Virus record (IMG/VR): IMGVR_UViG_3300020179_000005
Coordinates: 145,702-209,701 of that record
Reading direction: 5' to 3' (one strand)
DNA length: 64,000 nucleotides
Shown: positions 21,903-48,166 of the stretch, piece by piece
How positions within the stretch are numbered: position 1 is the stretch's first letter
Layout of the letters: the number at the start of each line of letters is the position of its first letter
The notes under the pieces: model-generated
Seen by the model: the letters and a program-made list of their open reading frames with translations, nothing else
The model's database searches: none
What the model was told of the DNA's origin: nothing
Made by a program: the position numbers and the translations under genes

Positions 21903-21912
21903 ATATGCTATA

Positions 21913-22784: not shown

Positions 22785-22790
22785 TTCTAT

Positions 22791-22876
22791 GCCCAGGTGG
22801 CGGAACAGGCAGACGCAAGGGGCTTAAACCCCCTCGACTAGAGATAGTCGTACGGGTTCAATTCCCGTCTTGGGCA
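22791..22876 (+). tRNA. trnL: tRNA-Leu(UAA)
   Basis: GCCCAGG/CTTGGGC acceptor, anticodon TAA, long variable arm CGACTA..TAGTCG. Confidence 0.92.
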
Positions 22877-22897
22877 CATATTGGTTAGGGAGGTGTT

Positions 22898-23224
22898 ATG
22901 CCAGAAACGTTTGATCAAGATTATTCTTGGATAGAAAGTGCAGCATGCAAAGGCATGACACACTTATTTTTTGGGCATGTATCTGAGCGTCCACAAGCTG
23001 CTCATAGGCGCGAAGAAAAGGCTCGTAAAATATGCAATAACTGCGATGTTTTTGAGCAGTGCAGAAACTATGCCCGCTCGAACAGAGAGCATGGTTTTTG
23101 GGCTGGCGAAAATGAATACGACAGATCTTTACTTGGATTTGGTCCACCGAACATAAAGCTCCGTCGTTCAACTGTTTATCGCAGAGCAGCCAACACCATT
23201 GAAGGTGAAGATATTGGCGAGTAG
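22898..23224 (+). CDS. whiB: WhiB family transcription regulator
   Basis: WIESAACKG..LFF..KARKICNNCDVFEQC..GFWAG: four Cys plus the G(V/F)W(G/A)G motif. Confidence 0.9.
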   Translation: MPETFDQDYSWIESAACKGMTHLFFGHVSERPQAAHRREEKARKICNNCDVFEQCRNYARSNREHGFWAGENEYDRSLLGFGPPNIKLRRSTVYRRAANTIEGEDIGE

Positions 23225-23287
23225 CTCAGTTGGCAGAGCAAGGGACTGTTAATCCCTGGGTCGCAGGTTCGAGCCCTGCCTCGCCAG
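23215..23287 (+). tRNA. trnN: tRNA-Asn(GUU)
   Basis: TGGCGAG/CTCGCCA acceptor, anticodon GTT. Confidence 0.92.
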
Positions 23288-23324
23288 CACGGTTTATACG
23301 CATAATATTTATGAAAGGAATATT

Positions 23325-24737
23325 ATGAAGAAGATTTTTATTTCACTTATTGTTTTGGCATTAATGCCTTTGTTTGTTTTTTCGAACACAACAAGTGTCA
23401 AAGCAGATACATTACAGGCGTTAGGGCCAGTTAAGTTCAGAATGAATCTTACAAGAAGTTTGTCGCAGATTGGTGCTGTCAAGGCTCATCAGAATCTACA
23501 CAAAGGCAATGGGTCTTTTGTGGTCGTTATAGATTCAGGCGTAGATGTTCAATCTTCATTTTTGTCCAACAAGGTGGCGTTGGAAGCATGTTTTGCAGTA
23601 GCCTGTCCAAATGGTACAACCAAAATGATTGGACAGGGAGCCGCAAAGCCGGTTCACTGGCATGGTACTCATGTGGCAGGAATCGTCGCCGGTTCCAACG
23701 CCAACATGTCAGGAGTCGCACCAGAAGCAAAGATAATTGCAGTAAATATCTTTGACAGATACGGATCTACGTTTGACGGCAATATCATTGCTGCATTGCG
23801 GTGGGTTGATTCGATATCATCCGAATACAACATTGCTGCAGTAAACATGTCTCTTGGCACGACGATGGTATTTAAATCATCTTGCAATAGCTATATTCCA
23901 GATCTTACAAGTATTATCTCTAAACTTAAGTCAAAAAATATTGCCACAGTTGTGTCAGCAGGAAACGCTTATTCTCACGGAATGAGTTCTCCTGCATGCA
24001 TAACCGACACTATCAGTGTAGCTGCAACCTATTATAATAGGGACGAAGTAACTAAGTTTTCCAATGTTCATGAAGATACAGATTTTTCCGCTCCTGGAGA
24101 TAATATATATTCTTCAGAATTGAACGGTTCTTACAGAACTGCTTCAGGTACTTCCATGGCAGCTCCTCACGTTGCTGGTGCTTACGCAGTATACAGATCC
24201 AAGTACGGAGTACAGTCTGTAGACAAAGTAACACAAGACTTTAAGGATAGTTCAATGCCTGCAATAGATGATTTTACATCCATCGTCACAAAAAGAATAG
24301 ACCTTGGATATTTGTTTGGTGACGGTCAAATGCCTTCACCCACAACTACAACAACAACGGTTTTGCGTCCGCCAGTAACCACTATCAAGCCTCCTGTTAC
24401 AACTACAACGGTTGTTGCGCCGGCTCCTCCTGAAGGAGACACTGAGTTTGTTTTGACCGTTCCTGAAATATTGGGCATATACAAAGATGTACACGGAAAA
24501 GATTATCTGTATCTTGATTTCAAGTATACTGGTAAAACAGATCTTCTTTCTGCATACTTATTTGATTGTTCATATTCTGGGTCAAACAATGTTTCAAGAT
24601 CTATTCGTAATAGAGGTCATAGATTAAATTATTTTTACGTTGCTATACCAGTATCTAACATTGATTCATGCAGAATTGCTGCTGTTTCAAAGTCTGGTGT
24701 TGTAGGTCAGTATACTGATTATTTCAAGTTAAAATAA
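23325..24737 (+). CDS. secreted S8 subtilisin-like serine protease with Thr/Pro linker
   Basis: Signal peptide; VIDSG, HGTHVAG, GTSMAAPHVAG catalytic triad motifs. Confidence 0.93.
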   Translation: MKKIFISLIVLALMPLFVFSNTTSVKADTLQALGPVKFRMNLTRSLSQIGAVKAHQNLHKGNGSFVVVIDSGVDVQSSFLSNKVALEACFAVACPNGTTKMIGQGAAKPVHWHGTHVAGIVAGSNANMSGVAPEAKIIAVNIFDRYGSTFDGNIIAALRWVDSISSEYNIAAVNMSLGTTMVFKSSCNSYIPDLTSIISKLKSKNIATVVSAGNAYSHGMSSPACITDTISVAATYYNRDEVTKFSNVHEDTDFSAPGDNIYSSELNGSYRTASGTSMAAPHVAGAYAVYRSKYGVQSVDKVTQDFKDSSMPAIDDFTSIVTKRIDLGYLFGDGQMPSPTTTTTTVLRPPVTTIKPPVTTTTVVAPAPPEGDTEFVLTVPEILGIYKDVHGKDYLYLDFKYTGKTDLLSAYLFDCSYSGSNNVSRSIRNRGHRLNYFYVAIPVSNIDSCRIAAVSKSGVVGQYTDYFKLK

Positions 24738-24768
24738 TGCCTTATCTCATCAAGAAAGGAAATATAAA

Positions 24769-25425
24769 ATGAAAGCAATTATTAATGGAATTGAGTTTGA
24801 AGGAACTCCTGAAGAATTTGTCAAGCTTATTGGCAAACATGATTCTTCAGTTTCTTCAAAGGGTTCTGAGGTTTATGTTTTTGATCCCAAAAGATTGAAC
24901 GGGAGTTCAAAGCCAAAGAGCAAAGATGATGCCAAGAGTGAATCCAAGGTAGTCGCAGAAGTAATGGAGACGTACTTAAGCGGCACTGCAGAGTTCCTTG
25001 CGGCACTTTATCGTTATCGTCCAAAGTTCGGTGGCGCATCCTATGCATTCCAGTTGTTTGCAACCGGTAAAGCATTTACCGTCAGATCTTTGGCTCAGAA
25101 GGCCGGTGTATCTTACGACGCGGTTTATGAGGTATTGCAAAGATCATTCAATGCAGGATGCAAAATCGGCATTGACAACAACCATGTTGCACCAGGTACA
25201 CTACAAAGATCAAAAAAGACTTTGTCTGTTTCCGGTAGCAAAGATGATACAATTTCAATTGCTTTGGAAACCAAGATTAGGTTGGTTTCTTTGGGTACGG
25301 TAGAACAAGCAAAAGTTGCCGCTGACAATACGCGTGTTGCTTTTCGAAAGAACAAAGACTCTAAGACCAAGGCAGTCGTTGTTTCAACAGGTTCACCACC
25401 CGTAACCAAGATAGTCTACAACTGA
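24769..25425 (+). CDS. hypothetical protein with possible HTH
   Basis: FTVRSLAQKAGVSYDAVYEVL. Confidence 0.6.
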   Translation: MKAIINGIEFEGTPEEFVKLIGKHDSSVSSKGSEVYVFDPKRLNGSSKPKSKDDAKSESKVVAEVMETYLSGTAEFLAALYRYRPKFGGASYAFQLFATGKAFTVRSLAQKAGVSYDAVYEVLQRSFNAGCKIGIDNNHVAPGTLQRSKKTLSVSGSKDDTISIALETKIRLVSLGTVEQAKVAADNTRVAFRKNKDSKTKAVVVSTGSPPVTKIVYN

Positions 25426-25432
25426 TTAGATC

Positions 25433-25505
25433 GCGCCTTTAGCTCAGTTGGTAGAGTAACGGACTTTTAATCCGCTGGTCGCGGGTTCGATCCCCGCAGG
25501 GCGCA
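25433..25505 (+). tRNA. trnK: tRNA-Lys(UUU)
   Basis: GCGCCTT/AGGGCGC acceptor, anticodon TTT. Confidence 0.92.
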
Positions 25506-25593
25506 CGGTCCAGCATTAAAAAGTTTGTTTGAAATAAAAGTATGCAGTGACGTACATTTCAAACTAATCAAACAAAAAGTAGGAGGAATTTTT

Positions 25594-25947
25594 ATGCCAC
25601 CATTGAAGAAGAATAAGGTCGTCAAGGAAGAAAAAACGACTTTGGAACAAAAGGTACAAGCAGCAATAAATTCCAGTAGTTATTGTATGATTCCCCATCT
25701 GTATGCAGATTATGTCACCGTTCGTAATCCAATTACCGGAAAGGATCATCATCTGAAGACAGACAGTGAAGTTTTTCTTGAAATGGTTTGGGATTTGACC
25801 CAAAGAGGGATGAAAGAAAAGATTTTAAAGGATCTTACGGCTTTTTCTGATTTGTATGATCCTAAATGGACAAAGATCATAGATCTTGTAAATGGTTATA
25901 TCAAAGGCAAGGAAACTGCTAATGTCGAAAAAGTCGAAAGCACTTAG
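25594..25947 (+). CDS. hypothetical protein
   Basis: AGGAGG SD before ATG 25594. Confidence 0.65.
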   Translation: MPPLKKNKVVKEEKTTLEQKVQAAINSSSYCMIPHLYADYVTVRNPITGKDHHLKTDSEVFLEMVWDLTQRGMKEKILKDLTAFSDLYDPKWTKIIDLVNGYIKGKETANVEKVEST

Positions 25948-26293
25948 ACCTTTTGTAGAGTCCGGCTCTATGAGCGACGTATTGTTGCATTTCATTTATA
26001 TGTATAGTAGGACCACTGCGTATACAGATCCTACGTCTAGTGAGCTCTATACAATAAATGCTGCAAGATATAAAAAGAAAGACAATTTAGAAAGAGCTCT
26101 GTCTAGATTGTTAAAAATGAAACTAGTGAACTTCTATTCTCACGCTGACGGTAAACGATATTTCATTACCGATCGTGGTATAGATTGCGTGTATAGACTT
26201 GCGGCTCTTAGAAAAAGAAGAGAGATTAAACATAAGCGGGATGCTGGTATAAACAGCACTAATTTTAAGTATGGTTATGATGAACTTTTATAG
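25922..26293 (+). CDS. winged-helix DNA-binding protein
   Basis: LERALSRLLKMKLV...RYFITDRG wHTH pattern. Confidence 0.6.
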   Translation: MSKKSKALRPFVESGSMSDVLLHFIYMYSRTTAYTDPTSSELYTINAARYKKKDNLERALSRLLKMKLVNFYSHADGKRYFITDRGIDCVYRLAALRKRREIKHKRDAGINSTNFKYGYDELL

Positions 26294-26365
26294 GGGCCGG
26301 TAGCTCAGTGGCAGAGTGTCACCTTTACATGGTGAGTGTCGGGGGTTCGATTCCCTCTCGGCTCA
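26294..26365 (+). tRNA. trnV: tRNA-Val(UAC)
   Basis: GGGCCGG/TCGGCTC acceptor, anticodon TAC. Confidence 0.9.
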
Positions 26366-26373
26366 CGACATAC

Positions 26374-26446
26374 GGGCCGTTAGCTCAGTGGTTAGAGCGT
26401 GGCACTCATAATGCCTTGGTCGTAGGTTCGATCCCTACACGGCCCA
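26374..26446 (+). tRNA. tRNA with CAU anticodon (Ile2-like or Met)
   Basis: GGGCCGT/ACGGCCC acceptor, loop CTCATAA. The fully paired 1:72 argues against fMet. Confidence 0.88.
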
Positions 26447-26653
26447 CCGAAACAGTAGCGTTAAGTATCCCGAAACGGTAGTGTTAAATATGACAGATAT
26501 GATTATCAGCAACATAGGTTATGGTTTATTTGTATGTTTGCTTGCGATTAGAATTTATGTAGGTATTAATTTTCTTGATAAAGAATCAAGAACATGTGAA
26601 GTTTGCGGAGTTGATCATGATTCATGAACCATATTAGACAAGGAGTGCAAATA

Positions 26654-29723: not shown

Positions 29724-30485
29724 ATGTCTGAGTTTTCGCGTCAGAATGACGATGATTTGTTTGATTACGATCCGTCTAAGGATAAACCAAAGGTATCACA
29801 CGATTATATTTCTTCTTCTTCTAATTCAAAAGTATCTAATGAAGTTTATGATCAGATTACAAAAAGCATTGAAGAAAACGACGATGAAAATTATTTGAAG
29901 ATCAACGGTTTGCGGATAAAATTTTCTCAGGCTATTTTGAATTCTTATGATTATTGGATATCGCCAATCGGCGCCATCTCGTCTTTTGTTACTATATCAC
30001 AAGTTCTTGATCAGTTAACTGGTGGAAGATTTTCCAGTTTATACCTTTACAATTATTTGGAAACCAGTATACTTAGACGCAAACATATTATATATCTTTT
30101 GAGTCAAACATTTGATCAAGTTTCTCGGAACAAAGACGACGACGATTCTTTTAGAGAGTTTTTGGCCAGACTTGATGTGAAGGTTTCTGATTCTTATCTT
30201 CCTACTTACGTAGGTACATTGGTAAGAATTTCCTCTCACATTCTTGCCAAGGACCGCGCAATGTATATCACATTGGCAAATAAACTTGATATTGTACCCA
30301 ATGCGTCTGTACTAGAGTCTGTTTCTTCACCTAGCGAAGTGTACAACAATTCTCAACAGAACGTCAAAGCGGCTTCGGATTGTTTGTTGCAGGAAACATT
30401 CAATAAATCAGTTGACATGGCTTTTGCTGAGAAGTTGAATAATTTGAATGGCACTCAAGTAGATTATCAGCTGCGTAGCATATGA
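29724..30485 (+). CDS. hypothetical protein
   Basis: ORF with SD. Confidence 0.65.
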   Translation: MSEFSRQNDDDLFDYDPSKDKPKVSHDYISSSSNSKVSNEVYDQITKSIEENDDENYLKINGLRIKFSQAILNSYDYWISPIGAISSFVTISQVLDQLTGGRFSSLYLYNYLETSILRRKHIIYLLSQTFDQVSRNKDDDDSFREFLARLDVKVSDSYLPTYVGTLVRISSHILAKDRAMYITLANKLDIVPNASVLESVSSPSEVYNNSQQNVKAASDCLLQETFNKSVDMAFAEKLNNLNGTQVDYQLRSI

Positions 30486-30913
30486 TAAAGTCTGTTGCCA
30501 TTCTTATTGTAACGGCAGTAGCAACAGCGGCTATAAATTATGCCTTGATGCCTACACCATTTGTGTTTTTTATAATACTTGTTCTTTTGGCTCATGAATT
30601 TGGACATTATTTTATATCTTTATTGAACAGAGCAAGTCCTGACTTACCCTATATTATACCGTTACCATTAATTGCAATAGGAATAACAAGAGTACATAAT
30701 TTTCAAGAGCTCAAGCCAAATTCCCAAAAGTCCATACTTTTTGGTGGGCCTTTGTTTGGCGTAATTACAGCTATAAGTATATTTATATATCTCCTTACAA
30801 ATCCAATCATTTCCCCACTTTATATGCTGATAATAGCATTGCTTGAGATCATTTTAAATTATTTCGGTTCTGACGGTTCAAGATACCGCAGAATATCTAA
30901 CAAGGAGTTATGA
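30482..30913 (+). CDS. M50 (site-2 protease)-like membrane metalloprotease
   Basis: LLAHEFGHY (HExxH) inside a TM segment; GGP motif; C-terminal D. Confidence 0.65.
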   Translation: MIKSVAILIVTAVATAAINYALMPTPFVFFIILVLLAHEFGHYFISLLNRASPDLPYIIPLPLIAIGITRVHNFQELKPNSQKSILFGGPLFGVITAISIFIYLLTNPIISPLYMLIIALLEIILNYFGSDGSRYRRISNKEL

Positions 30914-31009: not shown

Positions 31010-31237
31010 ATGACACAGTTAAACAGACAACAGAAGATAGACAGAATACAACAGTATCTTAATGATTGTTGTTTTGACATACAAGGAATTTCGAGTTCTC
31101 AATCTTTGATGAACACCGCTGAAGCACAGCTTGCAAGAATACTTACCAAAATAGTGGTCGGTGGTGCTTCTATTTGGTGGAGTGTTATGGAGTTGAGACA
31201 GTTTTTGAAAATCAGAAAAACGCAGAAAGGGTTATAA
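31010..31237 (+). CDS. hypothetical protein
   Basis: GAGG SD; ORF. Confidence 0.5.
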   Translation: MTQLNRQQKIDRIQQYLNDCCFDIQGISSSQSLMNTAEAQLARILTKIVVGGASIWWSVMELRQFLKIRKTQKGL

Positions 31238-31599
31238 TGTCGTCTAACATAGAAAGTTTCAATTTTTCTTTTGCCATGGCTGCAAAAGCCAAGGATTCTT
31301 TGGAGGAGCAAGTTTCTAGCGTAGAGTCTAGGATAGAAAAGATAGTCGATCATTTTACGATAAATGACGCACCGATATTGAAGTTCATTCTCAATATGAA
31401 TCCTACCAGAGAAGACCTTAAAAAATTATCTAAAGCTTTAGATCGTTTGTCTGATTTGGTAGAAATTTATAATACATTGGATTCAAAGTTGTCGGTTATC
31501 AATGCCGCAGAAAAGGATCCGAATTGGTTTGCTTTGGCTTTTGGTGATTTCAAAGAAGACATAGACAAAGGTATTGAGCAAATTCTAACAGAAGAATAA
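31237..31599 (+). CDS. hypothetical coiled-coil protein
   Basis: ORF. Confidence 0.6.
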   Translation: MSSNIESFNFSFAMAAKAKDSLEEQVSSVESRIEKIVDHFTINDAPILKFILNMNPTREDLKKLSKALDRLSDLVEIYNTLDSKLSVINAAEKDPNWFALAFGDFKEDIDKGIEQILTEE

Positions 31600-31620: not shown

Positions 31621-32700
31621 ATGGACAAAGTGTCTTACTCATTTGTAAAGCAAGAAGATAGCATTGTCTTTCGTTCCAAGGTACAGGCATTCAACCTTGA
31701 TCATGTAACGGACAAAGACATTCGTTCTTTTTATTTGCAGTTTTCACAGTATGCTGCCTTTGATACTGGTTTGTTACCGTTGGACGGAACTGGTTTGCTT
31801 TGTGTTCGCAAAGCAGGCGAATACACACAGGTTGCCTACCAGTACAAACCAGGTAGTTATTATGTTAACTGGGGGACATACGAAAAGGATCCTGAAGCCA
31901 AAAAGTATCTTTTGGCGCAACCTTATCGAGTGGTTATAATAGATTTTAAGTCCAACAATTTGTTGGGTGCTAGAACGTTTTACACCACTACCCCTGTTAC
32001 GCATCCAGATGTCCAGTTGTATCATGTTAATCTTCCCAACATAAATTGCAGAGGGTACCGCGGCAATGGCGTTGGATGGATTTGTTTGTATCATAATACC
32101 GATTGGAGTAGTCTGACGTTTAATGAGCGTTTGGCGCTTGCTTTGGAGCGTTGTTCCGGTTCTGAAGCATACAACGACAACAATATGTCGGAAACTGACG
32201 GTCCGAGATTCTATCGAGACATGTACCAGAACGATGCTTCTTTTTCCTACATGTGGAATCCCAGCGTTTGGCAGAACAAAACATCTCAGGACGGTTATGA
32301 GTGGACTTTGTTTGCCCCGTGGATTCCTGTTGTAGTTGAGGGTCTCGACCGGCAGGCAGCACATTCAACTTCTTCTGAAGCTGTTCCGCTTACATTTTCA
32401 ATGGCTTTGACTGGTACATACAAATCTTATTACACTGATAAGATGCCATTGAAACCCATAAATGCATTGCAGCGCAATGGAGAGAGCGTAATTACCGATA
32501 TTACCAACTATTTTGTACAGTCTTACAATAATTCTTCAACACAGTATGTTGGTAGGGACATAATGGAGGATAGTAAGAAGTTTAGAGACTCTAGAAAAGA
32601 AGTTAACCAAGGTCAGTTGTTTGAAGAGTCTGAGTCCGAAGAAGATGAAGATCATGATGATGACGACCATGATCAAGGGGGAGAAGAAGGTCCTTTTTAG
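31621..32700 (+). CDS. prokaryotic E2 family D-like ubiquitin-conjugating protein (copy 1)
   Basis: AQPYRVVII...QLYHVNLPNI...GWICL resembles the E2-D 'P.lv...Ly.aP.PNv..G.iC' pattern; lies within the Ubl operon. Confidence 0.65.
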   Translation: MDKVSYSFVKQEDSIVFRSKVQAFNLDHVTDKDIRSFYLQFSQYAAFDTGLLPLDGTGLLCVRKAGEYTQVAYQYKPGSYYVNWGTYEKDPEAKKYLLAQPYRVVIIDFKSNNLLGARTFYTTTPVTHPDVQLYHVNLPNINCRGYRGNGVGWICLYHNTDWSSLTFNERLALALERCSGSEAYNDNNMSETDGPRFYRDMYQNDASFSYMWNPSVWQNKTSQDGYEWTLFAPWIPVVVEGLDRQAAHSTSSEAVPLTFSMALTGTYKSYYTDKMPLKPINALQRNGESVITDITNYFVQSYNNSSTQYVGRDIMEDSKKFRDSRKEVNQGQLFEESESEEDEDHDDDDHDQGGEEGPF

Positions 32701-32801
32701 ATATAAATTCTAAAGAGACTTTCGATGGTGTACCACTTACAATACTGGCTCAAGACTACATAACTGGCAGTATTGATACTGTTGATTTTGACAATACTAC
32801 A

Positions 32802-33587
32802 TTGGTCTATTCCAATACTACTGGATTTTGGTATTCTAAAGATGGGGATTACTTGGCTGTTTGTTCAAATTGCGGTCAAGTACATTTTTGTTTTGAAGAA
32901 AATTATAATAAGTCTAATCCGTATGAAAGTTTTAATATTTGGTACCAAAATCAAGAGGCTTTCAATAATTTTTCTGATATGCCTGTTGTTATTTGTAGTA
33001 CTTGTAAAAAAGATTACATAGATGATATTTCAAAATGTAAATTATGTCTTGTTGATATACCTCCAAAAGAACATTATTCTCATGTTCACGAATTTAAAGA
33101 TACTAATCATTGTAAACATCTTATTTGTAATTCTTGTTCTAGTACTCATTGGTATCACCCTATGATGTGTCTGTGTGGCGAAGCAGTTTCAGAAGTTGAC
33201 ATGTATCAAATCAAACCGATAGTTATAGATGAAATAACTAGCACGCATCATTCAGACGCATTCTTTGCTTTGAAGGATAGGCTTCAACTAGAGCATACCG
33301 ATAGTGTTTATCTTTATGCTACTAAGATTTGTTCTTCTTGTTATTCAGAAAATCCATTTGATTATAATAAATTTATAAATAAGATATCAACTAATATTAA
33401 TATAGAAAGTTTGTCTTGTGTTGCTGATTCTTTGGGTGATATCGAGACAAAATATATACAATTGGTTGAGACTTACTACAAAAAGCCTACAGACGATGAT
33501 GTTGAAGTGTTAGTGCCTGCAATTTATTTACAGGCTCAAATCAAAAGTCACGGCTATGTAGGATATTTCTCTAAAGAAATAGTTTAA
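32802..33587 (+). CDS. Cys-rich Zn-binding protein with RING-like ligand pattern
   Basis: C-x2-C-x21-C-x-H-x2-C-x2-C-x10-C-x-C, plus additional CxxC pairs. Confidence 0.55.
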   Translation: MVYSNTTGFWYSKDGDYLAVCSNCGQVHFCFEENYNKSNPYESFNIWYQNQEAFNNFSDMPVVICSTCKKDYIDDISKCKLCLVDIPPKEHYSHVHEFKDTNHCKHLICNSCSSTHWYHPMMCLCGEAVSEVDMYQIKPIVIDEITSTHHSDAFFALKDRLQLEHTDSVYLYATKICSSCYSENPFDYNKFINKISTNINIESLSCVADSLGDIETKYIQLVETYYKKPTDDDVEVLVPAIYLQAQIKSHGYVGYFSKEIV

Positions 33588-33615
33588 TTAAATAACAAAT
33601 TGAGGAGGATATGAT

Positions 33616-35388
33616 ATGACAGTACCACAACTGAATGACCTGAAGCATTTTTGGATGCCTTCAGGTGTTCCATGTTTTATCGCAGATCGTCAAGACATAT
33701 GCGATGTCGTGGAGAATATGGGTTTTCAAATATATTATTTGCTTTCGAACCACAAAACCGAAACCAAGTCGGTCACAAATAGTACTCCTTCTGCGTCGCC
33801 GCATAATTATGGTTATACCACTTATGGAAATTCAACCGTTACGTCGATAAAGATAGAAAAGAAGCCTAGACTTTTCAAGGTCGTAAACAATTACGTAGGT
33901 AGGGTAGTTGCGGTAAGTAATGACGAGTTTCCTGCTGAATTCATTGACATTGAAGACGAATGTACTTATAGCATGCCCCTCATTCCCATTGATGTTGTCA
34001 ATAAGCTGGATGAGTTCTTTAGGCTTGTACACTCACAGCACGGTACGGAATCAATCGTTATACTTACATACGATACTACCAAGACCGGACCAGCAGGTTG
34101 GGGTGTTCTGGTTCCGGAACAAACAAACACCGCAGCCCATTGCAAGTATGATGCCGACAGCATCGTTGCATTAAAGCCCGAGAACGTCATGATTGTTGGT
34201 TCGGTACATTCGCACCCGGATATGCCTGCCTATGCTTCAGGCACAGATCATGACGATCAAGCTGATTTTGATGGTTTACACATAACCTATGGTTGGCAAA
34301 AGAATGTAAACAATGGTGCCACACAGTATTATGCCGAGTTACAAATGGCAGGCACAGGATACAAACTTGACATGGAAGATGTTTTTGAAACTGTAACGGT
34401 GCAGAAAGATCCTGATCCTGAAGTTGTGGAGTGGTCCACTAAAGTAAAAAAAGCCTACCCCCCCTACCAGGGGGGATACAACACCATTCAAAATGGTCGG
34501 CACACGCAAACAACTCAAACGACGACACCACAACAGCAGCCTGGGCTTCAGACTGGGAAGGCGGTTGGGGGATCTAGAACTCCTTTGAAGCAGGCCAGAT
34601 TTCTGGAAAAGTACGAGGATATGCTGGCAGCTTATCATATGCCGTACAACGCCGTTCTGGCTATTGAGGCAGAGCTTGATGAGCGGAACAGAGGACATTG
34701 TCTTGTGTGCGAAACCGAGATTAATATCTCCGATGTAAGAATCGGTTTGTGTCCCACATGCGAAGTTCCCCTTGTTCATCCAGAAGACCATATGTCTACG
34801 ATTGTTGAAAAGGTAGAGTCTTATTTGATCGACAATTATTTGCCGTATACTACTCCCGTTTATTTGTATTCGTTTACGGATGATAATCTTCCAAGCATAA
34901 TGAATATCAGTGACGAATTGAGATATTATACGGGTACGGCAATGAAGCCTATCGTTCAGAATTCTACCGTCAAAAAGGCGGATGTTTCTGACCTGTCTGA
35001 TTATGTTCATTTGCCAACACATACAGAGGACGTAATACCCATAGACAGTGCTTTCAGCTCTGGACATACTGCTTGTTGTGGTGTAAGGATAGAGAATGCT
35101 GAAGCTGATTGCGTTTGTGCCGTGAGACTGATGCCCGATGATGTTGTGGATTTTGATAGTTATTTGGCTGAAAATGCTGATATATATGTTCCGAATTCTC
35201 CATGCCATGATTGTACCCATTTTTATTCCATCAAATGCCCTGCGTTTAGAGAGCTTTTGACAGAATGGGTAAGGTCTAAAGATAGTTTCAACATTATTCT
35301 TTACACACATTCCGTCAATGGTTGCAGCAATTATGAACATTATGCAAATTCTTTTGCTGAAATTCAATATAATGACGAAATTAGATAG
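33616..35388 (+). CDS. JAB/MPN isopeptidase with Cys-rich C-terminal extension
   Basis: GTESIVIL (E) ... VGSVHSHPDMPAYASGTD (HxH-x7-S-x2-D). Confidence 0.85.
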   Translation: MTVPQLNDLKHFWMPSGVPCFIADRQDICDVVENMGFQIYYLLSNHKTETKSVTNSTPSASPHNYGYTTYGNSTVTSIKIEKKPRLFKVVNNYVGRVVAVSNDEFPAEFIDIEDECTYSMPLIPIDVVNKLDEFFRLVHSQHGTESIVILTYDTTKTGPAGWGVLVPEQTNTAAHCKYDADSIVALKPENVMIVGSVHSHPDMPAYASGTDHDDQADFDGLHITYGWQKNVNNGATQYYAELQMAGTGYKLDMEDVFETVTVQKDPDPEVVEWSTKVKKAYPPYQGGYNTIQNGRHTQTTQTTTPQQQPGLQTGKAVGGSRTPLKQARFLEKYEDMLAAYHMPYNAVLAIEAELDERNRGHCLVCETEINISDVRIGLCPTCEVPLVHPEDHMSTIVEKVESYLIDNYLPYTTPVYLYSFTDDNLPSIMNISDELRYYTGTAMKPIVQNSTVKKADVSDLSDYVHLPTHTEDVIPIDSAFSSGHTACCGVRIENAEADCVCAVRLMPDDVVDFDSYLAENADIYVPNSPCHDCTHFYSIKCPAFRELLTEWVRSKDSFNIILYTHSVNGCSNYEHYANSFAEIQYNDEIR

Positions 35389-35391
35389 AAG

Positions 35392-36159
35392 GTGGATAAA
35401 ATGCAATCAAAAAGATTTGTTATCGTAGGTACAGGCGGCATAGGCACGTGGCTTGCTGCTGGTCTTGTACGTCTTTTGGAATGGAAAATGCCTGGTTCTG
35501 GTTTGATTCTCGTAGACGGAGACAACTACGAAGAGAAGAACAAGGAGCGCCAGGATTTTACAAAGTTAGGCAACAAGGCTGTTGTGAAAGCGGCCGAGTT
35601 GACGCCTCAGTTTCCCAAGACCACGATCATACCGGTACCAAAGTGGGTCGTGTCTGACGACAACACTGGAGTTTCCGCTGATAGTGATTCTCCCAGAATT
35701 AAGGCTTCCGACTTGTTGATTGACGGCGACGTTGTTTTTGCTGTCGTCGATAATTTTGCTGCTCGCAAGATACTTTTCGACGCCGCTGCAAAACTTATAA
35801 ACGTCGATGTATTCACAGGCGGTAACGACGATGCTTTGTTCGGTTCCATCTATCATTACCAAAGAAGAGATGGCAAGAACATAACTGAACATCCTGTCGT
35901 TTTTCATCCTGAATATGAAAATCCTCCTGACAAAAATCCAGGCGAACTTTCTTGTCAGGAAAGATCTAAGCTTGAGGGCGGTACGCAATTATTGGCTACC
36001 AATATGGCGGTGGCCGCATTCATACTTGGTAGGGTTCATAAGACCATTGTTCTAGATCAAAGTCCCGAAGAAACCGAAATCTATTTTGATTTGGGTTTGG
36101 GAAAATCTGAGCCCTACAACAGAATGGTTTCGCAGGTCAATCAACCTGCGATGGTATAA
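35392..36159 (+). CDS. ThiF/E1-like Ubl-activating enzyme
   Basis: VIVGTGGIG, VDGD.YEEKNKERQ, NKA, VDNFAARK, and LSC (candidate catalytic Cys). Confidence 0.88.
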   Translation: MDKMQSKRFVIVGTGGIGTWLAAGLVRLLEWKMPGSGLILVDGDNYEEKNKERQDFTKLGNKAVVKAAELTPQFPKTTIIPVPKWVVSDDNTGVSADSDSPRIKASDLLIDGDVVFAVVDNFAARKILFDAAAKLINVDVFTGGNDDALFGSIYHYQRRDGKNITEHPVVFHPEYENPPDKNPGELSCQERSKLEGGTQLLATNMAVAAFILGRVHKTIVLDQSPEETEIYFDLGLGKSEPYNRMVSQVNQPAMV

Positions 36160-36184
36160 AACAACAACACAATAGGAGAATAAA

Positions 36185-36436
36185 ATGGATCAGTCAGCAT
36201 CGCAGAATCAACCTTCTGCATCGCAAGGTATTGCCAATGTTCGCTTTGGTGTATACAATCAGCCAAGCAACATTGGAGGTAAAACAGTTTCTCAGGCAAG
36301 AGAGCAGTTTTCTCGACTGTGGGGCATTCCCACGGACGCTGTTGCCTACAAAGGCAAGGACAAACTTGATGAAAACTATGTCATCCAGCCAGGCGACAAC
36401 GTGGAGTTCCACCGTCGCGCAGGCGAGAAGGGCTGA
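36185..36436 (+). CDS. ubiquitin-like (beta-grasp) modifier ending in RRAGEKG
   Basis: GKTVSQAR...YVIQPGDNVEF pattern, C-terminal Gly, directly after E1. Confidence 0.75.
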   Translation: MDQSASQNQPSASQGIANVRFGVYNQPSNIGGKTVSQAREQFSRLWGIPTDAVAYKGKDKLDENYVIQPGDNVEFHRRAGEKG

Positions 36437-36535
36437 TATAGTTCAAGGTTTGAGTGGGGGGGACCATAACCTTTCAAATGGTTTCCCCCACTCTTATATA
36501 AAGGCGATATTTAATACAATAGAAAGCAGTATTTT

Positions 36536-38134
36536 ATGTTAAACGAAATAAAGATTGGTTATCCTGCTTTATGGATAAAAACCACTGAGTATTCTAGGGT
36601 TATTAGTAATATCGTGTCTTTTGATTTCAGAGACTATTATATGATAGATCCACAGCAAGGGTTTTCCAAGTACGTTGATTCAGATTGGAAACCGGTGCTC
36701 GTAGAATTTACTGACGAATCAGGCACAGTCGCTCATGTTCACACTTATGATTTATCTATTGCCGTAAATCATATAAAGAATAATACCGTTTCTGGAGGCA
36801 AGGCGCCTACGTTTTTGCTTCCCATACATGGCAAGCCAGAGGTTAATTTGTTTAGGTACGTGCCTATGGTGTATCAACTTGTTGAAAAGTATCGCAAGTC
36901 CTTTTGGACCGACACCATGTATGAAGAAATGCAGTTCATATTTCTTTCCGCTTTCGATGTGCCTGTTGATTATCCCAACCTTTTCAAAGTCATAGGTCAT
37001 GGAGTTCCCACTTCCGAAGAGTTGTTCCACATTGTGGATCATATTAATGTGTCTTCACATGGTCGTTTTGTTAATCCAGAAACCGTAAAAGATCTCGTAA
37101 AATCTGGCATTGGTCTAACGGAAACTGATTTCATCGATTATTGTTTGACTTCAATAGTCGACAACGGTCTTTTGGATCCAAAGTACATATACGAGAGAAA
37201 GATGGCCACCGTTAAACAAAAGGGCATTCTTGAGATCATAAAGCCTCGGTTGACATTTGCCGAAATCGGTGGTCTTGATAACATCAAGAACATAATCAAA
37301 CGTACCGCTTTCCTTAGGAACAATAGACAGAAAGCTGAGTCTTTTGGTGTGTCTCCAATCAGAAGAATATTGATGGTTGGTGTCCCCGGCACTGGCAAGT
37401 CGGCCATCTGTCAAGCTACCGCTAGTGAACTTGGGCTTGATCTTGCCAGAACCGGCATCAGCCAAGTCATGAATTCTTTTGTTGGTCAGTCAGAAGCCAA
37501 CATGCGTGCGGTGTTTAATCAGATTAGAGCTATGACGCCTTTGTGCGTTTGGATTGACGAGTTTGGTCGTGATCTTTCTGGTGGTTCGAGTTCGTCACAA
37601 GTTGACGCCGGTACCACAGATCGTGTCCATGGCGAGTTCTTAACTGGATTACAGGAATTACCAGAAGATACATTTTTGATGTGTGCCGCAAATCAACTTG
37701 ATAATTTGCGACCAGAGATGCTTCGCGCTGATCGTTTCGACAAGATAGTGTTCGTTGGTTTGCCATCTTACAGTGAGCGTGTAGAGATACTAAAGATATA
37801 TTTGTCTGGTATAGATACCGATCACGAGTACGATTATGATGCCCTTGCAAGAGTAACCGAAAATTTCACCGGTGCAGAGATTTCTGCTTTGATTAAAGAA
37901 GTCAAGTTCTTTGTTGTTGCCGATGAATTTCGTGCAATCAACACCCAGGACATTATGGCTCATGCCCCTAATGTTAAGAACATAATTTGGAATAAACATA
38001 GAGATATGATAAAATCAATGTACAGTTATGCCTTGGCACAATGGGATTGGGCTTCTTCTGAACAACAGATCGATGCACAAAACGTACTATCTGGTCGTAC
38101 CGTTGATCAGCCGCAGGTTACTTGGAAAATATAA
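36536..38134 (+). CDS. AAA+ ATPase (Ycf46/CDC48-like, one intact ATPase domain)
   Basis: IGGLDNIK, GVPGTGKS, WIDEFG, AANQL..LRPEMLRADRFD. Confidence 0.9.
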   Translation: MLNEIKIGYPALWIKTTEYSRVISNIVSFDFRDYYMIDPQQGFSKYVDSDWKPVLVEFTDESGTVAHVHTYDLSIAVNHIKNNTVSGGKAPTFLLPIHGKPEVNLFRYVPMVYQLVEKYRKSFWTDTMYEEMQFIFLSAFDVPVDYPNLFKVIGHGVPTSEELFHIVDHINVSSHGRFVNPETVKDLVKSGIGLTETDFIDYCLTSIVDNGLLDPKYIYERKMATVKQKGILEIIKPRLTFAEIGGLDNIKNIIKRTAFLRNNRQKAESFGVSPIRRILMVGVPGTGKSAICQATASELGLDLARTGISQVMNSFVGQSEANMRAVFNQIRAMTPLCVWIDEFGRDLSGGSSSSQVDAGTTDRVHGEFLTGLQELPEDTFLMCAANQLDNLRPEMLRADRFDKIVFVGLPSYSERVEILKIYLSGIDTDHEYDYDALARVTENFTGAEISALIKEVKFFVVADEFRAINTQDIMAHAPNVKNIIWNKHRDMIKSMYSYALAQWDWASSEQQIDAQNVLSGRTVDQPQVTWKI

Positions 38135-38142
38135 GGAGACAT

Positions 38143-38766
38143 ATGTCAGACATGGATCAAATAGAATATCAGATGTCTCAGACTGCTGAGCCTGTTGTAT
38201 CTGATATCTTACAGAAAGATTACGAGAAAGATCTTTACAAGAAATGGTTTAGGTCTAAAACTCAAAGTGGATTTTTGTCCATAAGGCCTTGGTATCAAGG
38301 TCTTAAGTTTAAGCTGGACATAGGTAAAACTTCGCCCGATGGCAAACTCATTTCTAGCACGATGGTATATTTAGATGCCATAGATTTTTCTGGTTATTTA
38401 AATTCTATTGCTATTGGTATAGGAAGCATAAATTTTCCCGCAAACAGCAAAACCGGTATTCCAACCGATGAAGGTTTTGTTTCTTACGGTGGAGGCATAA
38501 TAGAGTCAAAACCTATTTCTAGGATTTTCAAGTCTCATTATTGGCAGAATTCCGATAATAGTTTTGATTCTTCTGCGTTTGTTTGGAAGTGCGGTCATTT
38601 TGCTGCTAGAAAAACTGAGTCAGGTGCATTCATCCCGGACATGAAATCTTCTTTGTCCGTTGATAGCATAAAGGTTACTAGATCAGAAATAGTCAGCATC
38701 TCTCATATGTTGAATCTTTCGTTGATATCTCACGTGGCAAACAAATCAGATTGGTATGCCGTATGA
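38143..38766 (+). CDS. hypothetical protein
   Basis: AAGGAG SD. Confidence 0.7.
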   Translation: MSDMDQIEYQMSQTAEPVVSDILQKDYEKDLYKKWFRSKTQSGFLSIRPWYQGLKFKLDIGKTSPDGKLISSTMVYLDAIDFSGYLNSIAIGIGSINFPANSKTGIPTDEGFVSYGGGIIESKPISRIFKSHYWQNSDNSFDSSAFVWKCGHFAARKTESGAFIPDMKSSLSVDSIKVTRSEIVSISHMLNLSLISHVANKSDWYAV

Positions 38767-47536: not shown

Positions 47537-48166
47537 ATGACTACCATAGTGGGTATACAGGGCGATAATTTTTCTGTGGTTTGTTCTGATTCGCGTATAT
47601 CTACCGTTGATGATGAAGGTGTCATTTCTCAAATTACTACTTTGAAAGATGGAAACGGCAAAGTTGCAGTGAATGGAAAGTACCTTTTAGGTGCGGCGGG
47701 AGACATGAGGGCGATTAATCTTTTGCATCATGTTTATCAGCCTCCGGCTGTACCTCCGGCAACGGTCGGTAAAAAGTTAGATCAGTTTTTTACTTCTAAG
47801 GTTGTGCCTTCGATAAGAGAGTGTTTTGAACAACATGGATATGCTTTGCCTGATACCAATGAAAAAAAGCATATAGCAGAGAACGATTCTACTGTTTTGA
47901 TTTCTGTTGCAGGAGTAATATACATACTTGATGGAGACTATTCTTGGACTTCTGATGCGCAGAATTTTTATGCTATAGGCACAGGGTCTTCTTATGCTCT
48001 GGGTGCCTTGCAGGTCATTAGAGGGAAAAGAAAGATATCCATAAATCAAGCTAAGACTTTGGCCCTTAAGGCCGTCAACGTCGCCGCAAGGTTTGATCCA
48101 GGCACTGGAGCTCCTTTTCATACTTTTGTGCAGGAAACGCCTAAAGTAGGCAAGAGACGTAGGTAG
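47537..48166 (+). CDS. proteasome beta/HslV-like Ntn threonine peptidase
   Basis: Met-Thr-Thr N-terminus, DSR, GAAG, AIGTGSSYALG, D..TG. Confidence 0.85.
   Translation: MTTIVGIQGDNFSVVCSDSRISTVDDEGVISQITTLKDGNGKVAVNGKYLLGAAGDMRAINLLHHVYQPPAVPPATVGKKLDQFFTSKVVPSIRECFEQHGYALPDTNEKKHIAENDSTVLISVAGVIYILDGDYSWTSDAQNFYAIGTGSSYALGALQVIRGKRKISINQAKTLALKAVNVAARFDPGTGAPFHTFVQETPKVGKRRR

Follow-up and report, generated by a model that had tools for sequence, protein, structure and literature searches.

A probable ubiquitin-like protein tagging cassette encoded by a large freshwater phage, as identified from sequence analysis

A large freshwater phage carries a full set of ubiquitin-like tagging genes, comprising an activating enzyme (E1), a conjugating enzyme (E2), a tag (Ubl) and a tag remover (JAB), next to a probable protein-unfolding motor. 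These assignments are based on sequence comparisons and predicted structures. In bacteria such systems have so far been studied mainly as defences against phages, so a virus-owned version is unusual and testable, and no description of such a phage cascade was found in the literature searched. The analysed window is a stretch of 64,000 nucleotides (positions 145,702 to 209,701) of the IMG/VR record IMGVR_UViG_3300020179_000005, a 209.7-kb viral contig from lake water. A preliminary description of the window reported six consecutive same-strand genes with E2-D-like, Cys-rich, JAB, ThiF/E1, beta-grasp and AAA+ motifs, and this observation is confirmed. The accompanying interpretation, a phage-borne conjugation cascade with a RING-like component, kinship to bacterial E1-E2-JAB-Ubl operons and the ATPase as unfoldase, is partly supported.

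Composition of the cassette and its setting

Positions of the cassette genes and of other features in the 64,000-nucleotide window
Feature	Position	Strand	Length	Assignment
WhiB gene	22898-23224			WhiB
M50-like gene	30482..30913	+		small membrane protein with HExxH, Peptidase_M50-like; possible accessory component, or merely syntenic
g0	31237..31599	+	120 aa	conserved alpha-helical protein; possible accessory component
g1	31621..32700	+	359 aa	divergent E2-like conjugating enzyme (Prok-E2_D / PRTRC_B-like), short form
g2	32802..33587	+	261 aa	multi-CxxC zinc-ribbon-type protein; probable E2 targeting or adaptor (E3-like) module
g3	33616..35388	+	590 aa	JAB/JAMM metallopeptidase
g4	35392..36159	+	255 aa	minimal ThiF-type E1 adenylating enzyme
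g5	36185..36436	+	83 aa	ubiquitin-like beta-grasp modifier
g6	36536..38134	+	532 aa	single-module classical-clade AAA+ ATPase (Cdc48/VAT/PAN-like); probable unfoldase
Peptidase	47537..48166	+		proteasome-beta/HslV/BPH-like N-terminal-nucleophile peptidase; speculative candidate downstream protease

The E2-like protein g1 has no direct hit in Pfam or the PDB, and its confident AlphaFold2 (AF2) model (pLDDT 81), which features a helix, a beta-meander, a long active-site loop and then helices, finds no UBC fold in the PDB by Foldseek. The g1 family comprises 211 clusters at 50% identity, its nearest Atlas clusters are 86-100% viral, and the nearest cluster carries Prok-E2_D in 13% of its members. 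No member of the g1 family hits Pfam Prok-E2_D directly. The assignment rests on profile-profile alignment and context. An hhalign comparison of the family profile with the alignment of a bona fide Prok-E2_D protein (Pfam 1.8e-27) gave a probability of 88.7% and an E-value of 2.6e-6 over 125 columns, and pairs the YHxxLPN motif and the GxxIC(L/M) cysteine. The candidate catalytic residue of g1, Cys155, is located in G-W-I-C-L, is preceded by H135-x-N137-L-P-N, and is invariant across 49 divergent members. The protein ends in an acidic tail and G-P-F.

The protein g2 contains 15 Cys, including six CxxC/CxC pairs. The preliminary description called this component RING-like, which is not shown, as g2 matches no RING family and no other Pfam family. 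It is instead homologous to the multi-CxxC C-terminal extension that is fused to the E2 in most relatives (hhalign of the E2 extensions against g2: 97.2%, E 4.5e-11 over 155 columns). This provides a Rosetta-stone link between g1 and g2, and g2 is the detached counterpart of that extension. An orthologue is located between the E2 and the JAB in the related contig L185 (39% identity, 1.6e-57). Coding of g2 may begin upstream, near 32703, since conserved in-frame residues lie upstream of the TTG start with no canonical start codon.

The JAB domain of g3 spans residues ~88-285 and matches Pfam Prok-JAB (1.6e-6, above the gathering score). The JAMM motif is intact, with E145, H198-x-H200, S208 and D211 invariant in 7 orthologues. 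The domain is flanked by a conserved N-terminal domain (residues 1-45), a CxxC...CxxC zinc ribbon (C362-C382) and an 8-Cys C-terminal domain. The E1-like protein g4 matches Pfam ThiF (1.2e-11), the PADLOC E1-E2 models (1.1e-7, over its nucleotide-binding part) and NCBIfam PRTRC_ThiF (8.6e-5). It features a GxGGxG nucleotide loop, a D-N-F-A-A-R motif and a single invariant Cys188, and has neither a rhodanese domain nor CxxC zinc motifs. The g4 profile finds no solved E1, so the equivalence of Cys188 to the crossover-loop Cys is by position only. It is the most conserved gene of the cassette (71-86% identity; pN 0.09-0.10).

The small protein g5 has no Pfam hit. Its AlphaFold model (pLDDT 80) shows a beta-beta-alpha-beta-beta-beta order following a disordered S/Q-rich N-terminus, and matches ubiquitin, NEDD8, SUMO and ISG15 in the PDB with a Foldseek probability of 1.0 and TM 0.6-0.7. 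The C-terminus reads ...H-R-R-A-G-E-K-G followed by the stop codon, so that the tag ends in a single Gly preceded by Lys, not in Gly-Gly. The GEKG-stop ending is found in all but one of the 41 homologues aligned, and is kept in lineages where the E2 is only 30-43% identical. The exception adds two residues after the Gly, as expected if a peptidase can expose it. For g5, pN is 0.03-0.12 against a pS of 0.6-0.74.

The ATPase g6 matches Pfam AAA (2.7e-23) and AAA_lid_3, with CDC48 at 6.4e-35 and PAN at 1.5e-34, and its best PDB sequences are Cdc48/p97/VAT at 1e-57 to 1e-53. The Walker A motif GVPGTGKS, the pore loop F-V-G, the Walker B motif IDE and the arginine-finger region of a Cdc48-type unfoldase are read from the translation, and the protein has its own ~230-aa N-terminal domain.

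The element is viral, as claimed in the preliminary description. It matches the IMG/VR contig at 100% identity over the two loci compared, and carries 7 tRNAs and phage helicase and protease families. The cassette is conserved across a large clade of phages, being syntenic in dozens of related large phage contigs, including 9 IMG/VR relatives and lineages whose E2 is only 30-43% identical. Each of the six genes was compared with a relative (g2 with a closer one, L185), and all are under strong purifying selection, with pN 0.03-0.39 against pS 0.6-0.83. The stretch recurs in at least 20 lake-water metagenome runs, and contigs of relatives occur in four metatranscriptome libraries, which is suggestive only. 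An actinobacterial host is plausible because of the WhiB gene, and the peptidase's best cultured match is an Actinomycetia phage.

Three further genes may be connected to the cassette. The gene g0, directly upstream of the E2, is syntenic in all relatives, including lineages whose E2 is 30% identical, however, it has no family match and no similarity to the helical protein of the plasmid cassette. The M50-like gene matches Pfam Peptidase_M50 at 5.6e-6, just below the cut-off, and is conserved two to three genes upstream of the E2, the same family being called upstream of the E2 in the related contigs L180, L181, L185 and L186. The proteasome-like peptidase, 9.4 kb downstream, matches Pfam Proteasome (4.4e-8, above the cut-off), an archaeal beta subunit (5.7e-8), HslV (5e-4) and the PDB BPH structure 5ovs (2e-5), and features an invariant M-T-T start, D18, K42 and a G-x-G-S motif. 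It lies 11-16 kb from the E1 in at least 11 related contigs, although the family is far wider than the cassette.

Proposed mechanism and alternative readings

The best explanation, held with moderate confidence, is a virus-owned ubiquitin-like conjugation system of the PRTRC / Prok-E2_D lineage, carried by a clade of large (about 170-270 kb) freshwater phages that probably infect actinobacteria. In this view, g4 would adenylate the C-terminal Gly83 of g5 and would probably take the tag onto Cys188, the tag would pass to Cys155 of g1, and the E2 would then transfer it to amino groups of target proteins. Targets would be chosen by the multi-zinc-ribbon module, a separate protein here. The JAB peptidase g3 would remove the tag from targets and would also trim the rare precursors that carry extra residues after the terminal Gly. 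The adjacent g6 most likely acts on the tagged proteins by unfolding or extracting them. The gene identities, the catalytic residues, the conservation, the viral setting and the E2-zinc-module fusion are shown by the analysis, whereas the thioester relay, conjugation to protein rather than sulfur chemistry, the participation of the ATPase and the nature of the targets, host or phage, are inferences. No biochemical data for any PRTRC-type cassette were present in the papers found, so conjugation is assumed by analogy with Bil, CBASS and Bub. The preliminary description correctly recognized every gene, including the difficult D-like E2 and the beta-grasp protein with its C-terminal Gly, apart from the RING-like label. 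The roles that it proposed, the tagging of host defence or regulatory proteins, the countering of host Ubl-based immunity and the remodelling of phage proteins, cannot be told apart with sequence data.

A tentative alternative is that the functional unit consists of the E2, zinc module, JAB, E1 and Ubl, and that g6 is an independent phage chaperone or remodelling ATPase that sits next to the cassette because these phage genomes are collinear. The g6 family (phrog_8638, 6.3e-68) also occurs in Agrobacterium phage JP1 and in Rhizobium and Rhodobacter phages. In JP1, the one of these contexts examined, the homologue (32% identity over residues 151-499) lies between lysis and replication genes with no E1, E2 or JAB annotated nearby. 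In the more distant relatives L182 and L183, 5-7 small ORFs including an HNH gene separate the Ubl from the ATPase, and the related cassette of Bacillus phage vB_BceM_WH1 has no ATPase within 7 kb. Additionally, g7, which overlaps the end of g6, gives Whirly/PurA-like leads, pointing to a DNA-metabolism block. However, in the window and its closer relatives the ATPase follows the Ubl after about 100 nt on the same strand, and it stays downstream of the Ubl in every related contig long enough to show it. Cdc48/VAT-type unfoldases are the natural readers of Ubl tags in archaea and eukaryotes. The link of g6 to the system rests on synteny among collinear genomes only.

It is unlikely that the main job of the system is counter-defence, in which the JAB would strip host tags from phage proteins and the phage Ubl/E1/E2 would compete or act as decoys against Bil or type II CBASS immunity. 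Bil systems tag a phage tail protein to block assembly and CBASS uses E1-E2 conjugation (PMC11601603, PMC10097602), and a phage-borne JAB with large extra domains could recognize such conjugates. However, a peptidase alone would be enough, yet the E1, E2 and Ubl are the most conserved genes of the cassette, so conjugation itself is selected, and no similarity to Bil or Cap3 models was found in PADLOC or NCBIfam. A sulfur-carrier or adenylation-only pathway, in which g4 would convert a ThiS/MoaD/TtuB-like g5 to a thiocarboxylate for thiolation of tRNA, cofactor or DNA, with the JAB processing the carrier, is the least likely reading, since although ThiF/MoeB models are the next-best NCBIfam hits of g4 (5.4e-5 to 1e-3), the carrier ends in Gly as ThiS and MoaD do, and the phage encodes 7 tRNAs, an E2-like protein with an invariant Cys is always present and often fused to a zinc module, the E1 has no rhodanese domain, no thiamine, molybdopterin or rhodanese partner and no ThiG/ThiH/MoaE/TtuA-type partner was found among the neighbouring genes scanned, the g5 model is closest to ubiquitin, NEDD8 and SUMO rather than ThiS, and the nearest relatives of all three enzymes are plasmid PRTRC-type cassettes, not biosynthetic operons.

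Comparison with known systems

The archaeal and eukaryotic Ubl-unfoldase-proteasome pathways (SAMP/Urm1-like tags, Cdc48/VAT/PAN, Rpn11-type JAMM, 20S) and the Caldiarchaeum E1/E2/RING cascade (PMC5654768) share with the phage the combination of a Ubl tag, a JAMM peptidase and a classical-clade AAA+ most similar to Cdc48/VAT, and a proteasome-family peptidase is encoded in the same genome. However, no RING was shown, the peptidase is a single HslV/BPH-like subunit whose family is widespread in phages that lack the cassette, no HbYX tail is present, and the ATPase tail is not conserved in distant relatives. The tail assembly proteins TAPI (Ubl) and TAPK (JAB + NlpC/P60) of lambda/T1 (PMC1779556) likewise combine a phage-encoded beta-grasp protein with a C-terminal Gly and a JAB peptidase, but those phages have no E1 and no E2 and the genes sit in the tail module, whereas here a full cascade sits among early/replication-type genes (helicase, SSB, UDG).

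The Bil (bacterial ISG15-like) operons, BilA-D (PMC10557695, PMC11601603), feature a separate Ubl, E2, JAB peptidase and E1 with the order E2, JAB, E1, and the expected chemistry is a thioester relay onto target lysines that is reversed by the JAB. Bil is a host defence that tags phage tail proteins, while here the phage owns the system, no Bil model matched, the E2 belongs to a different, D-like family, the Ubl has a single beta-grasp domain, and an ATPase and a zinc module are added. Type II CBASS Cap2 (an E2-E1 fusion) and Cap3 (JAB) share the E1, E2 and JAB chemistry. In the phage the E1 and E2 are separate proteins, a free Ubl replaces the CD-NTase C-terminus, and there is no cyclase or effector.

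The genes gp214-gp215-gp216 of Bacillus phage vB_BceM_WH1 (LC597490; annotated hypothetical, hypothetical, ThiF) are very distant (13-25% identity), and no Ubl ending in Gly was found among the neighbouring small ORFs. This cultured 230-kb phage nevertheless has the same order of E2-like, JAB and ThiF genes, with hhalign probabilities of 93.4% for the E2 family against gp214 and 94.5% for the JAB against gp215, and a tblastn E-value of 4e-5 for the E1.

The PRTRC-type kinship noted in the preliminary description holds for the E2, JAB and E1. PRTRC-type cassettes (TIGR03735-03742; row 6d of Iyer, Burroughs and Aravind 2006, PMC1779556; Pfam Prok-E2_D, Prok-JAB) are carried on plasmids and conjugative elements. 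The direct NCBIfam hits, to PRTRC_A and PRTRC_ThiF, are weak and score far below the curated cut-offs (16 against 102 bits; 22 against 145 bits), there is no hit to PRTRC_B, C, D, E or F, and no ParB-like gene was seen next to the cassette. The Ubl follows the E1 rather than preceding the E2, the E2 carries, or is followed by, a multi-CxxC module, an AAA+ ATPase follows, and the carrier is a lytic-type large phage rather than a plasmid or ICE. However, both are carried by a mobile element, the gene order E2, JAB, ThiF is the same, and each of the three phage enzymes aligns best to this type, with hhalign probabilities of 88.7% for the E2, 91.2% for the E1 against the PRTRC-like plasmid ThiF, and 86.9% (E 4e-6) for the JAB against the PRTRC_A-like plasmid JAB, with which it shares the VPxQxxT..C and HSHxxMxAYxSxTD signatures.

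The cassette and its viral setting

The window contains six consecutive ORFs, g1 to g6, that are separated by 3-101 nt. The preliminary description reported these as a same-strand run of E2-D-like, Cys-rich, JAB, ThiF/E1, beta-grasp and AAA+ genes, and this observation is confirmed. Direct profile searches identify three of the six proteins. The g3 protein (590 aa) has a Prok-JAB domain with an E-value of 1.6e-6, which is above the Pfam cut-off, g4 (255 aa) is a ThiF-family adenylating enzyme (1.2e-11), and g6 (532 aa) is a classical AAA ATPase with its lid domain (2.7e-23; CDC48 6.4e-35 and PAN 1.5e-34). PADLOC adds a hit of the nucleotide-binding part of g4 to the CBASS E1-E2 models (1.1e-7) and a hit of g6 to IetA. 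The remaining proteins, g1, g2 and g5, match nothing directly in Pfam, NCBIfam, PADLOC or PHROGs. Megablast of the cassette and tblastn of g1 against 50,697 GenBank phage records gave no match, and promoter and terminator scans gave no usable operon boundaries. The coordinates of the features are collected in the table.

Coordinates of the cassette genes and other features in the window and in related records
Location	Strand	Feature
Window 11970-26448 and 52715-52786		Seven tRNA genes (Arg-tct, Leu-taa, Asn-gtt, Lys-ttt, Val-tac, Met-cat, Gly-tcc), mostly scattered singly between protein genes rather than in one array
Window 17091-18017	+	Transposase-like gene (phrog_4285)
Window 20214-21902	+	ResIII/SNF2-type helicase
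Window 22898-23224	+	WhiB-family regulator gene (108 aa), wedged between tRNA-Leu and tRNA-Asn and overlapping the start of tRNA-Asn by about 10 nt
Window 23325-24737	+	Secreted-looking S8 subtilase with a Thr/Pro-rich linker
Window 30482-30913	+	Small HExxH membrane protein, Peptidase_M50-like
Window 31237-31599	+	g0, helical 120-aa protein
Window 31621-38134	+	Six-ORF cassette, g1 to g6
Window 31621-32700	+	g1, divergent relative of E2 family D
Window 32703-32801		Open reading frame upstream of the first canonical start of g2 (TTG at 32802)
Window 34630-35385		C-terminal 250 aa of g3, the JAB protein
Window 36536-38134	+	g6, AAA+ ATPase
Window 38122-38766	+	g7, overlapping the end of the AAA+ gene by 13 nt
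Window 47537-48166	+	Proteasome-beta/HslV/BPH-like peptidase (209 aa)
L182:14259-15711 and L183:14293-15075 (more distant relatives)		Block of small ORFs, including an HNH/HTH homing-endonuclease-like gene, inserted between the Ubl and the AAA+ gene
L184:4719-7813 (Bacillus phage vB_BceM_WH1)		gp214-gp216, E2-like, JAB and ThiF trio
L013:67094-67804 (Clostridium argentinense plasmid pRSJ17_1)		Stand-alone ThiF gene

The element is a phage. IMG/VR contig UViG_3300020179_000005 (209,701 bp) matches the window at 100% identity over the loci fetched, and a second sample gives the same sequence. In addition to the tRNA genes, the window features phage-type helicase and subtilase families and has about 36-44% G+C around the cassette, and at least 20 lake-water metagenome runs hold the stretch. 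Nine further IMG/VR contigs (up to 216 kb) keep the order g0, g1, g3, g4, g5, g6, g7, g8, with protein identities of 71-86% for the E1, 70-83% for the Ubl candidate, 50-64% for the ATPase, 50-62% for g1 and 39-46% for the JAB protein. An alignment-seeded scan finds the E1 in 47 viral loci. One 267.8-kb viral contig, IMGVR_UViG_3300042868_009074, holds two copies of the E1 gene (loci L153 and L159) about 215 kb apart, at 75-76% identity to the window, which could be a concatemer, a mis-assembly of two related phages, or a real duplication. The only plasmid hit of the E1, with 25% identity over 93% of its length, is the stand-alone ThiF gene of Clostridium argentinense plasmid pRSJ17_1. It lies among hypothetical genes next to DNA polymerase III subunit genes on a 140-kb non-mobilisable plasmid that may be a phage-plasmid, and no JAB or E2 is annotated beside it. 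The g1 family forms 211 clusters at 50% identity in 1.84 billion proteins, and the Atlas labels its nearest clusters 86-100% viral. Synonymous sites are saturated (pS 0.6-0.83), while pN is 0.03-0.12 for the Ubl, 0.09-0.10 for the E1 and 0.19-0.39 for the others. Contigs of relatives occur in four aquatic metatranscriptome libraries, with differences falling at every third base, although this does not prove transcription.

Predicted components of the conjugation cascade

The g5 protein features a predicted beta-grasp fold. With 41 homologues as the alignment, AlphaFold gives a model with a pLDDT of 80 and the beta-beta-alpha-beta-beta-beta order of a beta-grasp, after a disordered N-terminus. 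Foldseek matches this model to ubiquitin variants, NEDD8, SUMO1, ISG15, FAT10 and the Bacteroides fragilis ubiquitin-like protein at probability 1.0 and TM 0.57-0.65. The last residues, E-F-H-R-R-[A/S]-G-E-K-G followed by the stop codon, are invariant or nearly so, and the exposed or exposable C-terminal Gly that such modifiers use for adenylation is present: 40 of 41 homologues end in GEKG-stop and one continues with N-W. Additionally, lineages whose E2 is only 30-43% identical still end in G-E-K-G.

The assignment of g1 is less direct. Across 52 close and 49 distant members, the conserved core includes L-Y-H-x-N-L-P-N, followed about 12 residues later by V-G-W-x-C-L-Y, and of the three conserved cysteines only Cys155 stays invariant in the distant set. 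The AlphaFold model (pLDDT 81, pTM 0.79) shows an N-terminal three-stranded addition, a helix and a six-stranded beta-meander, a 45-residue loop that holds these motifs and is locally less confident, and several helices after the loop. This order fits a UBC-like core, however, Foldseek finds no UBC match in the PDB (best E 0.35) and against BFVD found only uncharacterised phage proteins. Profiles of the g1 family against PDB sequences found nothing. None of about 100 family members scanned reaches the gathering score of Pfam Prok-E2_D (PF14460), including the 52 and then 49 members that were scanned one by one. An exhaustive profile search and an alignment-seeded word search returned only the phage family itself, and the link to Prok-E2_D therefore had to be made through a plasmid cassette. 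The JAB domain found a Pseudanabaena plasmid with adjacent JAB and ThiF genes, and the ORF just upstream of them is Pfam Prok-E2_D (1.8e-27) and NCBIfam PRTRC_B-like (8.4e-14), with neighbours that are PRTRC_A-like (1.4e-17) and PRTRC_ThiF-like (1.9e-39). The hhalign comparison of the diverse g1 family (alignment A6) against this plasmid protein and its close relatives (alignment A7) gives 88.7% probability and an E-value of 2.6e-6 over 125 columns, and aligns D-T-G-x-x-P, Y-H-x-x-L-P-N, the G-x-x-I-C cysteine and the following helix. Weaker versions of this comparison were also obtained, and a further alignment, A3, against A7 aligns the cysteine as well. The Atlas independently places Prok-E2_D clusters among the neighbours of g1. 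The g1 protein is therefore accepted as a divergent relative of E2 family D with Cys155 as the likely active site, although it is not a member by Pfam's own threshold. The 83-aa ORF of the plasmid cassette is not similar to g5, and its helical protein is not similar to g0.

The preliminary description called the Cys-rich protein g2 RING-like, and this label remains unproven. In most relatives the E2 is 450-760 aa long and carries, after the core, a region with four or more CxxC pairs. The g2 protein gave no tblastn match in those relatives, however, a profile of the E2 extensions aligns to g2 with 97.2% probability and an E-value of 4.5e-11 over 155 columns, and the BLASTP hits of g2 all fall collinearly in that extension. 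Closer relatives with a short E2 have a separate ORF in the same place, one of which is 39% identical to g2 (E 1.6e-57). So g2 is the detached form of an E2-linked zinc module, which is a strong functional link to the E2. Neither g2 nor the E2 extensions hit a RING model, no other named zinc-finger family matched, and the profile finds only weak zinc-ribbon ribosomal proteins in the PDB, although an E3-like targeting role is a reasonable inference from the fusion. The reading frame of g2 is open and encodes residues conserved with the orthologue in the relative L185 for about 20-30 codons upstream of its first canonical start, with no ATG, GTG or TTG there. The gene may start at a rare codon (an ATA follows the E2 stop at once), restart after the E2 stop, or have lost its N-terminus.

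The g3 protein consists of a conserved 45-residue N-terminal domain, a low-complexity linker, the JAB domain, a Q/T-rich linker followed by a CxxC...CxxC ribbon, and an 8-Cys C-terminal domain (CC, CxC, CxxC, C, C). The E...HxH x7 S xx D zinc site of the JAB/JAMM metallopeptidases is complete, with E145, H198, H200, S208 and D211 invariant. By hhalign, g3 aligns to the PRTRC_A-like plasmid protein (86.9%) and shares its V-P-x-Q-x-x-T...C and H-S-H-x-x-M-x-A-Y-x-S-x-T-D signatures. The C-terminal Cys domain gives a sub-threshold match to the cytidine/dCMP deaminase zinc-binding region (E 0.003-0.011) through a P-C-x-x-C motif, and it is not similar to the zinc module of the E2. The g4 protein scores 44.7 bits against the Pfam ThiF cut-off of 28.1 and keeps the invariant G-x-G-G-x-G nucleotide loop and D-N-F-A-A-R motif. 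It features one invariant cysteine, Cys188, in N-P-G-E-[L/M]-S-C-Q about 65 residues after DNxxxR, and it has no rhodanese domain and no CxxC pairs. It aligns to the PRTRC-like ThiF (91.2%), however, its profile finds no solved E1 among PDB sequences, so the placement of Cys188 on the crossover loop is by position only.

The AAA+ ATPase, neighbouring genes and likely host

The AAA module of g6 is closest to the D1/D2 modules of Cdc48, p97 and VAT (1e-57 to 1e-53). The Walker A/B motifs, aromatic pore loop and second region of homology of the classical-clade AAA+ unfoldases (Cdc48/VAT/PAN/FtsH) are present. Walker A, an F-V-G pore loop, Walker B and the arginine-finger region were read from the translation, so the protein should translocate polypeptides. 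The ATPase follows the Ubl in every related contig examined, however, in the two more distant lineages L182 and L183 5-7 small ORFs intervene. These genomes are collinear over tens of kilobases, so synteny is weak evidence of shared function. The same ATPase family (phrog_8638) occurs in other phages, and in Agrobacterium phage JP1 it has no E1 or JAB nearby. The distantly related Bacillus phage cassette has no adjacent ATPase. The participation of the ATPase is considered likely but not established. In the close clade the E2 nearly always ends in an acidic stretch plus P-F (E-P-F in 61 of 338 family members and S-P-F in 26) and the ATPase ends in W-K-I, but both tails are lost in more distant relatives, and the idea that they are conserved docking motifs was dropped.

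The Peptidase_M50-like protein and g0 precede the E2 even in a lineage whose E2 is 30% identical, and they may belong to the system. Downstream, g7 is conserved at 57-76% identity, its only leads are Whirly/PurA-like (single-stranded nucleic-acid binding) neighbours in the Atlas, and it is not similar to the gene after the JP1 ATPase. An SSB and a UDG-superfamily gene follow further downstream. The proteasome-like peptidase scores 33.4 bits against the Pfam Proteasome cut-off of 22.4 and matches BPH 5ovs at 2e-5. The N-terminal Thr nucleophile, the Asp17/Lys33 equivalents and the GxGS motif of the proteasome-beta/HslV/BPH family are present, with an invariant M-T-T start, D18, K42 and G148-x-G150. 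It is syntenic 11-16 kb from the E1 in at least 11 related contigs, however, the family has more than 574 viral loci, and it occurs without the cassette within 10 kb in several viral contigs and, by its annotation, within 20 kb in Actinomycetia phage DSL-LC01. Phage proteasome homologues are known, and no AAA+ partner has been found for them (PMC8665760).

One NCBI record labels a homologous contig Flavobacterium sp., but a Flavobacterium host was rejected in favour of an actinobacterial one after WhiB and the DSL-LC01 match were found. Three findings point to actinobacteria. WhiB genes are typical of phages of actinobacteria, and the WhiB-family protein of the window is 61% identical to a Pfam-Whib gene in a related contig. 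The best cultured match of the peptidase is DSL-LC01, an Actinomycetia phage from a lake in which a WhiB gene follows the peptidase. After two Tunturiibacter phages, the nearest cultured relatives of the helicase are actinophages, and those of the ATPase include many mycobacteriophages. An actinobacterial host is likely but unproven.

Interpretation and comparison with known systems

The interpretation in the preliminary description is partly supported: it is right in its core, a phage-owned Ubl conjugation cascade of PRTRC-like descent, and unproven in the RING label, the role of the ATPase and the biological purpose. The analysis itself establishes the gene identities (that of the E2 through remote homology), the conserved catalytic-type residues, the viral setting, the purifying selection and the link between the E2 and the zinc module, whereas the E1~Ubl thioester, covalent conjugation to target proteins, the targeting role of g2 and the participation of the ATPase are inferred. 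A more far-reaching reading is not excluded but is unlikely on present evidence. In this view the phage would encode a self-contained, ubiquitin-proteasome-like degradation pathway, in which the zinc-module E2 would tag chosen host (or phage) proteins with the 83-aa Ubl, the Cdc48-like ATPase would recognise and unfold them while the JAB strips the tag, and the phage's own HslV/BPH-like peptidase would then degrade them. That would be the first viral tag-unfold-degrade system and the first AAA+ partner for a phage proteasome homologue, a partner that Fuchs et al. 2021 (PMC8665760) looked for and did not find.

Prokaryotic E1-E2-JAB-Ubl systems have recently been shown to perform real protein conjugation. 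All characterised examples (type II CBASS, Bil and Bub) are host systems and most act against phages, whereas here the same kind of machinery is a conserved, strongly selected part of a large and abundant clade of freshwater phages. It comes with two additions, the E2-linked multi-zinc-ribbon module and the adjacent Cdc48-like predicted unfoldase, that recall E3 targeting and tag-directed unfolding in eukaryotes. Full-text searches found no paper describing a phage-encoded E1-E2-JAB-Ubl cascade, which in an incomplete library is absence of evidence only, and a review of jumbo-phage genomics mentions none (PMC7824862). If the system conjugates proteins, it would show that viruses of bacteria use Ubl tagging offensively or for their own proteome, it would give the uncharacterised PRTRC-type cassettes a first functional foothold, and it would provide small, separable parts (the 255-aa E1 and the 83-aa tag) for biochemistry. 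The system is abundant in nature and experimentally approachable.

The core order E2, JAB, E1 and the remote homologies place the cassette nearest to the PRTRC-type / row 6d operons of Iyer et al. 2006 (PMC1779556), which are plasmid- and ICE-borne and for which none of the papers found reports biochemical work. However, the cassette fails every curated PRTRC threshold (NCBIfam TIGR03735-TIGR03742). The g4 protein scores 22 bits (E 8.6e-5) against the PRTRC_ThiF cut-off of 144.75 bits, where the Pseudanabaena plasmid homologue scores 135.5 bits, g3 scores 16.4 bits against the PRTRC_A cut-off of 101.8, and g1 has no hit to PRTRC_B, so that the remote homology of g3 and g1 to these families appears only by hhalign. 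The other PRTRC proteins are lacking, with no NCBIfam hit to PRTRC_C (Ubl), D, E or F for g0, g2, g5 or g7, and no ParB family appeared among the neighbours scanned, which did not cover the whole window. It is therefore a relative of the PRTRC system and not a member. The cassette does not have the composition of type II CBASS, because the E1 and E2 are separate rather than fused as in Cap2, only the nucleotide-binding part of g4 hits the E1-E2 models, no Cap model matched, and no cyclase was seen among the neighbours scanned. By analogy it should work like Bil, with separate Ubl, E2, JAB and E1 (PMC11601603, PMC10557695), but no model named Bil matched in PADLOC or NCBIfam, libraries that may not hold Bil models. 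A distant but cultured relative of the enzyme trio exists in the 230-kb Bacillus cereus phage vB_BceM_WH1, where the E2-like, JAB and ThiF genes lie in the same order and are annotated only as hypothetical, hypothetical and ThiF. No Ubl ending in Gly was found among its neighbouring small ORFs and a NADAR-family gene follows the ThiF, and this phage offers an experimental entry point. The lambda-type TAPI/TAPK pairs share only the Ubl and the JAB with the cassette.
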